Notes: generated by a model not told the origin, from the letters alone. 64,000 nucleotides of DNA from Oikopleura dioica (GCA_907165135.1 OU015567.1:9734001-9798000), one strand, 5' to 3'; positions 26,408-31,174 are shown, counted from the first letter of the stretch. A program made the numbers and translations.

Positions 26408-29400
26408 TTATGCTAGCGTTTCGGGCAACCTCGGAAACTCACTGGAATTCGTCTCTGAAAATGTGGCTGTAATCAAGGAAAGAAGAAGCAGTTTCATTTC
26501 AAATCTTCTCTTTTTGGACTCAAGTTTGAGGGATCGAGCGCACAAGTTAAACGGCTCAATAATGCAGGGCTAGAAATTATTTAACGGACTAGCGTTTCAG
26601 AATAGTGAGCTAAAAACCTCATCTTGAGCGTGTCAAAGCAAGCAGATTTAGAATTATTTGACCATGCCGCTAGTTTGACTATTATTGTAGAAACAATCAT
26701 TTTGTCCTTCTTTATTAAATAAAAACGTTTCAGAAATGCATTCACAATAACAAGTTGACAGTTGGAAATAAGCACTTTTTTTAAAGAAGTAATTCTACGG
26801 TTGCCAGTTTTCTAAATGGATATTAGTCAGCGAACTTGAACAAGGTACTTGCGGAAGTCAGGGATGTCGCTTGCGAAGTGTCCTATTTGATCGGGGACGT
26901 TGTAGAAAGGATCGTTTGGGTTTGCTTGTTCCGGAAAATTCGACATCGGCTGAGCTGATCCGATCGCGTGATTCGACACGTGTCCTCCATTCCCCATTTG
27001 ACCTAATGGAAATTCATTCGCTGTCTGGTTTCGTCCAACTGCTAGACAGAACCGAAAGCCAAATATAGTCATCCCTTCTCATACCACTATTAGATAATGT
27101 TAACTTACCCATCGAGCCATGAGTGGGATAAGAAAAGGCTCCTCCTTGAGGGCAGAAGCTGGCAGACTCGTTAGCCATCACGTGTGGTCCATTTTGAGGA
27201 TATTGACCATCACCAGGATATGGAATGTTATGACCGTGCTAGGAGGAAAGTGTTTTTCAAGTTGACGCAAAAAGAGAGAGAGAGCAGTTAGGACGATTTC
27301 CAAAAAATAAAAACCTGAGGATAGCCATTCCAATTTTGGGAGGATTCCGTGCTGCGATAAGCGTTGTACTCATTCATTTTCGACTGAACGGCCACTTTTG
27401 CTTGGTAAACTTCATGCTAGAAAGTCAAGTCATAAAATATTCTTGTGATCTAATTGACGGTGCCTTGACCATTTGCCAGAATCTCGGCTCAAGTTGACTG
27501 CTGGAATTAGTATTCATCGTGTCCACTTGAAGAGTCAATAGAAGCTCAGCAGTCGCGTGCCATTGGAGCCGCTCTTTCGGGCAAGTCTAAATAAGTGATT
27601 TCATGAAGCGACAAATCAATTTACCTGGACATCGTTTATGTATGCAGCCAAAAGACCCTTGCTTTCAAGCTGCTTGAGGATATAGTCGCGATATTTTTGC
27701 TCTTCGGCAACTTTTTTCGTCAAAATGGCTATTTGTGTTAGCATTCTTTCCTGACTCGGCGGACTTTTTTGACGAGCAATTTGGGTTAGATAAAAGGTTC
27801 GGTTCATGATTGCTTCGAGCTTACATAACCGGTTAAACATGGAATTGAGCTGTTTAGCAACTTGAGTGTCGTTCAACCGAGCCTTGGGTAAGATATTTTG
27901 ATCATTGAAGAAGCCTCCTTCGAATAAATTAGTGAGGAGCACGAGGATATCGTTGATGATTTTTCGTTGTCGAAATACGGAGTTTTCTCGCAAAATAAAT
28001 AGTATATAACATGGAAGCGCTCCTTTGAAGATCGAATTTGAGCCTAAACGATTACTTGTTCACGATTTCCATCATTTACAAAATTACCTGAGCCCGTTTC
28101 GCAGGATCTTGCGGAGTCTTCGTCATGTCATTCGTTAGAATTTTCAAAGTAGAGGTGGCTAACTCGAGCAAATCTGTACTTTTCCCTCGTGTATCCTTCG
28201 CCGACCCAATTATATGGAGCAACAGGTCTATCGAATTCGTATTGTTGACGAGATAAGCTAAATAGTGAAGTATTTATCCGTTGAACTGCGAATTTCGGGA
28301 GAAAATTGGTATTTTGTTTTTGCTTTCCACATTAGTTTTATTATAGTTAACGTGTTCTGACTACTCTCGGGCAGTCTAAAAAAAAAGACAAAAAAAAAGT
28401 AAAAAAAAATATGTTTTCAAAATAATCATGTTAACACGTTTAATGAACGCCTGTCTAAATTTTAGACTCTAAAACACTGACACTGTTTTTTTTATGTGTC
28501 ACTGTACTCTTACATTTTAACCAATATTTCTACCTTTATTGACACAATTGTTGCAAACGAGATTATACAAGATCCCTACGGCCATTGTTTTGATTCCCTC
28601 ATCTACGTTCGATGCAATAATTTTCGTCATCGCGTCAAGAATACTGTTATTATCGGCTTGCTTCGGCTGGCGGTTTGCCTCGTCGGAGAGATTGCGCAGC
28701 GTCAGAAGTGCATGAAGCAGCACTTTTTTCATGACAGCCGGGTCGCCCATGCAATTTGTTATGACAAAACCGATCGCCGTTATTCCGCCGCATTCGACGA
28801 TTTTCGGCTTGTTTAGTTTACAAACAGACAGGACCTTTTTAGGGCTCTTAACCCTTTAACTGGGCGCCTGGACCTACCCGTTAACGCGGGCGTGCAGGTC
28901 TCGCATGCACGAGAAATATTAAATTTCTAGCTGCCTGAATCATCAAAATCAAAAAAATTTTCCTAATTTATATTCATGAGCGTTTCCTCTTTCTCCTAAA
29001 TGTTTTTGTTTGCATTTGCGAATTTCGGAAAGGGCTGAAAAGTCATTTCAAAGTGAGGGTAAATTTCCCGCTCATTGGTCAAAAAGGGAAAAAGAGAAAG
29101 GGAAAGCGCGCGCCAATGCGTTTTTTCGCTGAGTTGAAATTTTCTTTTGTCCTTTTGGCGATAAGCGTTCAACTAAAATCAAAAACCGAGGAGTTGACTA
29201 GACGTAAAAATGTCTGAATTTTCCGAAAATGTAAGAATTTTTTGATATTTCATTGATAATTGAGGATTTATGGGGGGTCAAAGTCGGTGTGCAGGTGAAA
29301 CCTGCACGCCCTTGTTAACGGGTTAACTAAGGAAGGAGGAATTTTATACCTTTCTCATTAAAAATATGCTAAATACTCGTCACGAATCACATGCTCTTTC

Positions 29401-31174
29401 GATCCCCACGGATAAATCGTAAGGTAATTTATTCGATTTAATAGTTTTCGATGCTCAGAAAATGATTTTTAGCCCTTCCTTGAGAAGCCTCGTGATGTAA
29501 AGACCCAACTTTCCGTTGGAAGGTAAGGCCACAGGACGATAAAGCAGTTCCACCAGCATCTCGGGCACGTGTTCGTGGAGTAAAGCTTTCTTTGTAGCGT
29601 CATTTCGAAAAGAAACACAACGCAAAATGTCAACACATATAATGACGAACTTCGCCATCGATTGAATCATTTTTTGATCAATTTGGGAACGGTTTTCGTT
29701 CTGAGCTCTCGTAAATGCTAAATATCATTTCTATATAATAACCATGTCAGATCTTTGAGAAGAAATTCTAAAGCATCCTTTCCTGGTTTGAAGAATCTTT
29801 TCCGAAACTTTCCTTGCAACAACAGCTGGTCCTTGTATATCGCGGAATTTCGAAAAGATCGGAGCGTTAGAAGTTGGATTGCCTTCTTCATCTTTGATTT
29901 CGAGTTTAACGAGGATATTGTGAATGGAAGTGATGCTACAGAAGACCACGTGGTCGACCGTGGCGTTCAGCATTTTGATGAGCACTCGGAGCCCGTCAGT
30001 CTGCACGCCAAACATCCTACACCATGTTTTGCCTTCCTTATTTTTGGATATCGTCACATGACTCGGGAAAATATAAATTAGGACATTTGTCTAATAAGAC
30101 CATATCCTGGCCGTCTTTTGAAGTCAAATTGTAAATCGTTCTTGCCATCTCCTTCGCCACACGATCGTTTAGACATTTGTCCAGAGCTTCGACTACTTTG
30201 TGCCAGAAAGAAGGCTCTCCGGAGAGGATAGCCATTGCACCAGGACACTGACGGGTTAAATCATGGATAACTCGAGCAGCCAGGAATGTACATCGCATAT
30301 CTTCATCTGCAAGGTACTGCTCGATTTTAGGCGCGAATTGAGCCGTTGTTTGGGGCTGTTTCAAGATTTGTTCTTTGACGTTTTTGAGAACTCCTTCAAT
30401 TTGCATGATTTCTTCCTCTGATTTCCAACTGGTTCGCATTTCTTGGTGTCTAAACCATTCACTGTTCTGAAAGTCGTTGGAATATCCCGTGTTATTCGAC
30501 AGCTGCGAATCATTGAATGACGATAGTGAGTGAGTTTCTGAAGTTGTGAGAGATCCAATGCCAGAATCCTGGAGCTGTCCCCATCCATGATTCCAGTTTC
30601 CATCGATTCGACCCTGCTGGGGGCAGGGTTTGAAATCTGACGAGGTCACGAGCACGTGAGCACGTGAGTGAGCTCGATGAGCATGCTCACGCGTGCTCAT
30701 GCTCACGAAAATTTGAGCATCCCGTGCTCACGCGTGCTCATGCTCACTGAAATTTGAGCAGCCTCGTGCTCACGCGTGCTCGTGCTCACGCAAAATTTTC
30801 AGATTTCAAACCCTGGCTGGGGGTGCTGATGCTGTTGGCCGTAGTTATGATCATATGGGGCAACACTTGCTGGAGGAAACGGCTGGGCAGGATGTCCGGC
30901 AACAGTCGGCTGATAGATGCCTCTATTCTGCATTGCCTGGGACGGATTAAAAAAGTTTTACATCCGATGAACTATGGAATTATAAAGTTGAAGTAGAGAA
31001 AAGAGAGAGGTGGATTCTTCCATGTCTTCTACTAAATAAGGGTATTTCTGAAATAATATTCCACGTGAGAAACAAATTTCTTCGAATAAAAGAAGATTCT
31101 TAATGATATGAAATTTATCATGATATTATTGATGTAATCCGTGTCTGCATATGTTGATGCTGCTGACCAGCCAT
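26408..31174 (-). CDS. CTNNB1: Highly divergent beta-catenin/armadillo family protein; both ends approximate; N-terminal exon interrupted by a MITE
   Basis: Phosphodegron QDSGIGSLTTSETHSLS (S33/S37/41/S45 spacing). ARM repeats GLRVLIKMLNATVDHVVFCSITSIHNIL, KFVIICVDILRCVSFRNDATK, LLHALLTLRNLSDEAN and GILYNLVCNN align with beta-catenin repeats. Confidence 0.85.
28852..29322. mobile_element. piggyBac-like MITE in a beta-catenin intron
   Basis: TTAA|CCC...GGG|TTAA; about 34-bp imperfect TIR CCCGTTAAC..GGGCGTGCAGGT..TGCAC at 28877 and 29289-29322, plus an extra TTAA-CCCTTTAAC end at 28848-60. Confidence 0.75.
30624..30815. mobile_element. hAT-type MITE (192 bp) inserted in the coding exon of the beta-catenin gene
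   Basis: 17-bp TIR CAGGGTTTGAAATCTGA; 8-bp TSD GCTGGGGG (30616-23, 30816-23); internal GTGCTCAC/GCTCATGCTCAC arrays. Removing it restores the frame ..YGQQHQHPQQGRIDG.. Confidence 0.95.

Follow-up and report, generated by a model that had tools for sequence, protein, structure and literature searches.

Introners, spliceosomal introns derived from DNA transposons, are established in algae and other protists, Micromonas and Aureococcus among them (Huff et al. 2016, Gozashti et al. 2022; review PMC11282704). Among larvaceans, non-canonical introns derived from MITEs (miniature inverted-repeat transposable elements) are known from Fritillaria borealis (Henriet et al. 2019; PMC13326754; PMC11282704). 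In the nonconventional introns of euglenids, paired terminal inverted repeats (TIRs) join the intron ends, the borders carry repeats resembling target-site duplications (TSDs), and removal is precise and of a non-GT-AG type (PMC11282704, PMC12501133). Here we describe a 192-bp TIR element of the larvacean Oikopleura dioica, located in a stretch of 64,000 nucleotides (GCA_907165135.1 OU015567.1:9734001-9798000), hereafter the window. It is a young hAT-type insertion in a translated and constrained exon of a divergent beta-catenin paralogue, where it is flanked by an 8-bp duplication and introduces an in-frame TGA. The birth of an intron at this locus is a plausible hypothesis, and we put at about one half the probability that the element would be removed at the RNA level by one route or another, this weight being split roughly evenly between a scarred removal through GG or GA donors and a scarless one.

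The window element shares several features with introners: a short TIR element with its TSD lies within a coding exon, related copies occur in unrelated genes, of the two splice sites, one would be provided by the element and the second by either the element or the TSD, and insertion-free alleles or lineages exist. However, introners count hundreds to thousands of copies, their splicing is proven by RNA, and their donors are usually GT or GC, whereas the family described here counts 11 complete copies, is known from DNA, and has in-frame element-end routes that need a GG, GA, or CC 5' end. The likeness to Fritillaria lies in the TIRs and TSD-like repeats, and in the fact that both larvaceans are devoid of the U12 spliceosome. 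It extends to the presence of one repeat before the 5' site and again at the 3' end, which is YAY in Fritillaria and would be CAG...CAG in the scarless reading of the O. dioica locus. Contrary to Fritillaria, where about 95% of the introns are non-GT/AG (AG/AC, AG/AT), which is tied to duplicated U2AF subunits, O. dioica has a permissive major spliceosome and some 11-12% non-canonical introns, mostly GA-AG, with no CC-AG class reported (PMC8008620, PMC4122922, PMC7072748), and the locus is known from sequence. As in euglenids, the inverted repeats of the window element can pair, forming a hairpin of -105 kcal/mol, but the euglenid pathway is a distinct one, of non-spliceosomal appearance, in an unrelated lineage, and nothing indicates such a pathway in O. 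dioica. A further parallel is the maize Ds element, whose exonic insertions were reportedly found by Wessler and colleagues, in the late 1980s, to be spliced from the pre-mRNA via donors in the element termini. Both cases would have in common a non-autonomous hAT element in an exon, terminal donors, an imprecise removal that adds or subtracts a few codons, and an allele that is leaky rather than null; the maize system differs in the organism and in that its RNA products were sequenced, whereas here they are predicted.

O. dioica shows the fastest known intron turnover among animals, with massive intron gain and 76% of the mapped introns at new positions (PMC4122922). The initial annotation of the window had taken it as established that larvaceans gain introns from transposons; this is documented in Fritillaria, but our literature search for transposon-born introns in O. 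dioica found no paper showing them, and tunicates are not mentioned in PMC9860276. A transposon allele that segregates as present or absent in a constrained coding exon opens the first step of intron gain to a direct test, and this locus is a demanding test because conventional strong donors would yield premature stops. A functional transcript from carriers, if found, would show the use of GG or GA donors or a scarless non-canonical route, and broken transcripts would point simply to a young deleterious insertion. What the locus contributes is one lineage in which presence and absence of the insertion are cleanly paired, a second conserved gene hit by a sister copy, strong conventional donors that are unable to rescue either gene, and, as its target, a selected lineage-specific extension of a paralogue.

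The ends of the element are inverted repeats with 16 perfect nucleotides, and looser pairing extends to 41 nt at 73%. The 16-mer, CAGGGTTTGAAATCTG, is found at two places in the 64-kb window, which are the two ends of the element, with 0.10 expected by chance. Recomputing this anatomy returned the perfect 8-bp repeat and the 16-nt TIR, that is, the gain of 200 nt (192 bp plus TSD) reported in the initial annotation, and its two other structural claims also hold. Thus, the minus-strand frame opened by the ATG at 30933, MQNRGIYQPTVAGHPAQPFPPASVAPYDHNYGQQHQHPQPGFEI (MQNRG...HPQPGFEI), ends inside the TIR at the TGA of 30801-30799, and removal of the element with one duplicate restores a seamless open exon of 633 nt (3 x 211; ..HPQQGRIDGNWNHGWGQLQDSGIGS..). 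A second open frame runs on from inside the element through ..PQQGRIDGNWNHGWGQLQDSGIGS... Counted on the gene strand, the TGA occupies offsets 15-17 of the element, ahead of all six donor-like GTGAG motifs (offsets 27, 43, 69, 85, 110, and 126). The folded element RNA is a near-perfect hairpin (-105.4 kcal/mol, z = -9.1), for which an Rfam search gave no match.

Out of 24 sequencing runs, three DNA read runs (X1, X3, and X5) and one RNA run (X19) were compared with the locus, and the DNA runs show both states of the site. In run X5, from the same lineage (at least 99% likeness in most contigs), a contig joins 30615 to 30816 and skips 200 nt; 8 letters at this joint fit both sides, the contig is as deep (80.8) as the local single-copy sequence, and no sign of the occupied allele was seen in the run. 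Run X1 has a 332-nt contig (30344-30675), with two single-nucleotide differences from the reference, that crosses the left junction at full local depth, covering 280 nt of flank and 52 nt of the element. No empty-site joint was reported in X1, even though a 476-bp indel located 1.5 kb from the site is visibly heterozygous in this run. Run X3 gives an ambiguous picture, since its contig stops at 30623 and is followed by 34 unlike letters. The exon is uninterrupted in two lineages that stand further off, represented by a Logan DNA contig (L050, 97% protein identity) and a Tara metagenome contig (L051, 68%). Given the empty site in X5, the occupied junction in X1, and these unbroken exons, the insertion is derived, young, and segregating, which bears out the recent origin that had been deduced from the restored frame, and it is not private to the assembled animal. 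A metagenome scan for the empty or a spliced junction gave 0 matches.

The 476-bp indel is a second polymorphic transposon of the same gene (28850-29325), probably intronic and piggyBac-like in appearance, with ends reading TTAA^CCCTTTAAC...GTTAACGGG^TTAA (here and below, a caret marks a junction) and 35-nt subterminal inverted repeats. Runs X3 and X5 lack it; X1 carries it in the heterozygous state (joint 28849 to 29326).

The assembly that holds the window, OKI2018_I69 from Okinawan O. dioica, comprises 64.3 Mbp in 19 scaffolds and derives from a single mature male of culture generation 47, about 3.6% heterozygous, whose merged haplotypes gave a reference and an allelic set; non-GT/AG introns make up 11% of the total in this assembly (PMC8008620). 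The window lies on the second-largest scaffold (16.16 Mb), which is an autosome by the account that PMC8008620 gives of the two largest scaffolds. No second copy or haplotig of the locus was found in the assembly.

The gene hit by the insertion had been designated as beta-catenin, and it is the family, rather than the canonical gene, that stands. Because Pfam gave no armadillo match on the exon pieces, the identity of the gene was taken from PDB sequence searches, in which two exon pieces match beta-catenin collinearly (zebrafish chain residues 235-265 and 374-434; best E of 8.5e-4 and 1.2e-6, against other beta-catenin chains). The degron, DSGIGSLTTSETHS, has S/T at +1, +5, +9, and +13, the spacing of the GSK3/CK1 sites, and is kept in the relatives P0002, P0004, P0008, and P0009; the vertebrate degron, DSGIHSGATTTAPS, has the same spacing. 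The canonical beta-catenin sits on scaffold C4 in two copies, with a 464-aa single-exon armadillo-core ORF (PDB beta-catenin E 6.7e-154) whose matches at C4:6448234-6448419 and C4:6474750-6474935 (L052) have equal score and identity and lie 26.5 kb apart; no DSGxxS motif turned up in the 2.4 kb upstream of this core. A third divergent paralogue is found at C4:4303156. Since the window gene reaches 41-45% identity with the canonical protein in two short stretches only, we classify it by these comparisons as a divergent beta-catenin paralogue, with collinear armadillo repeats and the degron, and not as the canonical orthologue of CTNNB1.

An exhaustive protein search returned nine short fragments of relatives, three of which begin MNKM..W..W..VDSGI, about 12 residues before the degron. 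As the related larvacean proteins start there, the ~45 residues hit by the insertion are an extension specific to O. dioica lineages. Compared with L050, exon 1 has a dN/dS of 0.021 (dS 0.67), and the extension alone one of 0.12, with one indel of 6 nt, and the N-terminal extension is translated and under purifying selection. With such strong selection on the gene, a null allele should be costly. Neither a length-limited word search with the 222-aa ORF, which matched only two short DNA-derived ORFs, nor the exhaustive representative search returned a full-length or transcript-derived protein. For intron 1, a first candidate at 30100-30001 was dropped in favour of 30100-30037 on the relatives P0005 and P0006. 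At the 5' end of the gene, the codon at the window start ATG (30933-30925 against L050 41-49) is ATA in L050, and a T-rich stretch with AG (..tccgtcccag^GCAATG) just upstream of ATG 30933 is common to all three lineages; the 5' end may thus be an upstream exon or a trans-splice acceptor, which makes the start codon uncertain.

The family of the element was searched in 64,281,565 bp of genome in 19 pieces. The TIR has 29 exact copies, or 35 at up to one mismatch, compared with 1 for a reversed-pattern control, and 11 complete elements with differing flanks were recovered, of 192, 192, 192, 198, 395, 464 (L038), 1079, 1195, 2300, 2462, and 2597 bp. Their TSDs are perfect 8-bp repeats in ten elements and match at 7/8 in the other, all have the CAGGG terminus, and the copies nearest to the window element are 94%, 91%, and 83% identical to it. 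The hAT-type terminal motif is YARNG, which the TIR fits. No ORF of more than 100 aa or transposase-sized frame was found in the 2.3-2.6-kb copies, and none of the 9 genomic matches to the hAT dimerisation domain PF05699 is flanked by this TIR at up to four mismatches, so that no autonomous hAT partner was found; the nearest candidate, on C3, is degenerate and has another TIR (CAGGGCTGCC...). For lack of such a partner with the same TIR, we assign the element to the non-autonomous hAT-type MITEs from its 8-bp TSD and CAGGG terminus only. Of the earlier description as a hAT MITE, the TSDs, the terminus, the several copies, and the lack of coding capacity were recovered, and a transposase partner was not. 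A segmentally repeated block of ~4 kb on the same scaffold (L060, G000:C3:1856000-1864500) contains a 1.58-kb element with TIRs CAGGGCTGCCGAATTC... and a degenerate hAT dimerisation domain, which adjoins stretches 78% similar to the internal repeats of the MITE.

On one strand, AG stands at TSD positions 6-7 in 7 of the 10 independent insertions (four end in AGC), which looks like a target preference of the family; the pattern differs from the hAT target consensus nTnnnnAn. Two copies, L033 (C3:684645-684836) and L040 (C5:15728039-15728236), share the same TSD and near-identical flanks (..VTQIMYFLGKSAHFLSSSPTSRASSS..), and represent a single insertion, either carried along when its surroundings were copied to a second chromosome or nested in another repeat. 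A metagenome scan for the TIR gave 92 matches, with one TIR per contig, and among the 80 contigs compared by BLAST none was alike beyond 20-23 nt.

Other members of the family also interrupt genes. The copy L036 (2001-2192; G000:C4:6945932-6946123), of 192 bp and 94% identical to the window element, has the TSD CCACCAGT on the gene strand, and splits the conserved core ..VDVVYPP^VDDPHIAG.. of a selenophosphate-synthetase-like gene 19 nt past an acceptor, in the same orientation relative to the gene as the window element. The piece downstream of it matches human SEPHS1 (PDB E 1.6e-19), and the sole other genomic match is 33% identical. In its reading frame, a TGA falls at element offsets 8-10, so that rescue of the gene would need either the GG donor, which adds 8 residues to a conserved core, or a scarless removal. 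Two longer members lie across open reading frames (117 and 125 aa) that look coding but lack homology support. With 2-4 of the 10 independent insertions being exonic, no depletion from coding sequence is visible. It is also suggestive that AG occupies sense-strand TSD positions 6-7 in every one of the four ORF-interrupting copies, the chance probability of which is ~1/16.

The possible routes of removal or initiation at the window locus were all recomputed from sequence by script, and have candidate status only (Table 1). The most conventional of them would pair the CAG^GG donor with a TCAG^ acceptor and leave 3 + 13 + 8 = 24 nt, adding the 8 residues PDFKPCPQ to a protein segment that is missing from related larvaceans. 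Because donor and acceptor lie in symmetrical terminal repeats, this intron would preserve the reading frame in all three phases and both orientations, and none of the frames of the 16 retained element nucleotides contains a stop. In the GA-AG route, the exon side is CT, off the AG^GAA consensus of O. dioica, whose GA donors have AG before the junction and an A after (PMC7072748). The donors in the TIR, the rescue by GG-AG splicing with about 8 extra residues, an in-frame ATG within the MITE (at 30700), and the survival of the DSGIGS degron, downstream in every route, had all been proposed in the initial annotation and were found as described. The proposed GT-AG rescue is likewise in frame (+90 nt), but its coordinate of 30702 was off by one. 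The GA-AG and the scarless route are additions to the routes proposed there.

Alternatively, the element could leave without a scar through the CAG of the duplicated target. The TIR hairpin would here juxtapose both target-site copies, the second of which would provide the 3' site. That O. dioica can remove TIR-bounded transposons in this way through a non-G 5' end, here CAG^CC...CCCTGCCCCCAG^, is a tentative proposal that we consider rather unlikely. If true, it would be a Fritillaria- or Euglena-like ability, undescribed for Oikopleura, for which the presence/absence allele and the L036 copy in its YPP^VDDP core would be natural test cases.

Table 1. Features of the interrupted exon and candidate introns, in window coordinates.
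Feature	Position	Strand	Remarks
Target-site duplication, left copy	30616-30623		GCTGGGGG (gene strand CCCCCAGC); direct repeat, spacing 200 nt
Target-site duplication, right copy	30816-30823		Second GCTGGGGG
Non-autonomous hAT-like MITE, 192 bp	30624-30815		
Terminal inverted repeat, left arm	30624-30639	+	CAGGGTTTGAAATCTG
Terminal inverted repeat, right arm	30800-30815	-	Gene-strand 5' end of the element; CAG^GG and CAGG^GT donor-like sites and in-frame TGA
Internal tandem units (n = 3), 41-42 nt each	30684-30805		
In-frame TGA ending the read-through (..HPQPGFEI)	30799-30801	-	Inside the terminal repeat
Candidate GG-AG intron, 176 nt, leaves +24 nt	30637-30812	-	Product would read ..HPQPDFKPCPQQGR..
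Candidate GT-AG intron to internal ..TTTTCGTGAG^ acceptor, +90 nt	30811-30702	-	Exon would resume at 30701
Candidate GA-AG intron, 164 nt, leaves +36 nt	30637-30800	-	Stop codon split by the donor T^GAAAAT
Candidate scarless 200-nt removal, CC...AG	30617-30816	-	Good acceptor CCCTGCCCCCAG^ from the second TSD copy
Exon 1 upstream of the insertion, 44 codons from ATG 30933	30802-30933	-	N-terminal extension
Exon 1 downstream of the insertion	30101-30615	-	First armadillo repeats, degron
DSGIGS degron	30568-30551	-	
Inferred intron 1, 64 nt, GT-AG, phase 0	30037-30100	-	Junction ..DGQDM^EGKTWCRMFGV.. agrees with relatives P0005 and P0006

The explanation we favour is that carriers still make a working protein because the element would leave the pre-mRNA as a newborn intron. 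It is supported by the strong constraint on the gene (dN/dS 0.021), the derived and polymorphic state of the insertion, the L036 copy in a second conserved gene, the lack of visible depletion from coding sequence, and the intron record and permissive spliceosome of O. dioica. Several observations weigh against it. Joined to the element-end acceptor, the GT donor, one base past the GG donor, shifts the frame and leads to a stop at codon 82; it stays in frame with the weak internal acceptor alone. The six strong GTGAG donors are all preceded by the in-frame TGA, so that a conventional choice of sites would mostly give premature stops. GG donors are a rare class, the acceptor GACCTCGTCAG^ has a poor pyrimidine tract, and the hairpin hides the terminal donor and acceptor within a perfect stem of 17 bp. 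Among the reads, the insertion allele is absent from X5 and from all other lineages seen, and the RNA run X19 has 22 partial reads at 90-95% likeness, effectively none of them on exon 1, and probably comes from another lineage. Since the locus is autosomal and the haplotypes of a heterozygous male were merged, the insertion may be heterozygous and a recessive defect sheltered, in a genome that has three further beta-catenin family loci.

These points lead to the main rival explanation, a serious contender that we nevertheless hold at clearly less than even odds, namely that the insertion is an ordinary deleterious allele, null or hypomorphic, which truncates the protein after 44 residues or whose strong internal donors produce RNA with premature termination codons. 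Such an allele would persist because it is young, recessive, autosomal, and sampled from a small laboratory culture. It would be in line with the polymorphism (X5 and the other lineages being only empty), with best splice signals that yield premature stops, and with a reference that is the merged haplotype of a heterozygous culture male of generation 47 (PMC8008620). The second polymorphic transposon 1.5 kb away in the same gene also shows a haplotype that collects young insertions. A null allele is, however, hard to reconcile with the strong constraint on the gene (dN/dS 0.02), and in X1 the occupied junction reaches the full local depth, with no empty joint, even though this run is heterozygous at the 476-bp indel. 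The sister copy in a second conserved gene and a family that is not depleted from exons also weigh against it.

Retention of the element, with translation restarting at ATG 30700, would instead give a protein MSTREHAHRAHS...PQQGRIDG... with the degron and the conserved parts intact. This ATG shares the frame of the coding sequence that follows, with an A at -3, and the extension would not be universally required, given that related larvacean proteins begin about 12 residues before the degron. We nevertheless regard this restart as improbable: four out-of-frame ATGs precede it (30933, 30854, 30741, and 30720), the extension itself is under purifying selection (dN/dS 0.12), and ATG 30700 lies within the hairpin (-105 kcal/mol, z = -9), a structure so stable that, under the scanning model, it should block 43S subunits. 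Least probable of all, to the point of being scarcely credible, is a somatic excision of the DNA, by which the sperm-rich material of a male would keep an insertion that is absent from the expressing tissues. Nothing direct favours it, beyond an assembly made from a mature male (PMC8008620) and the hAT transposase remnants in the genome. On the contrary, no intact partner transposase with this TIR was found, and X5 is empty at full depth without the occupied allele, as a plain polymorphism predicts. Excision by hAT elements normally leaves footprints, and the empty site is exact. Removal of the element from the pre-mRNA is the reading that we retain, at the probability given above.

A second, unrelated insert was observed elsewhere in the window. 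It is 180 nt long (50691-50870), offers no GT and no AG at the boundaries that would keep the frame, is without a clear TSD, and lies, with the inverted ends TATGGGATTTATA / TATAAATCCCATA, in a KCNH/ERG-type channel gene just before ^LHLNRNLL...

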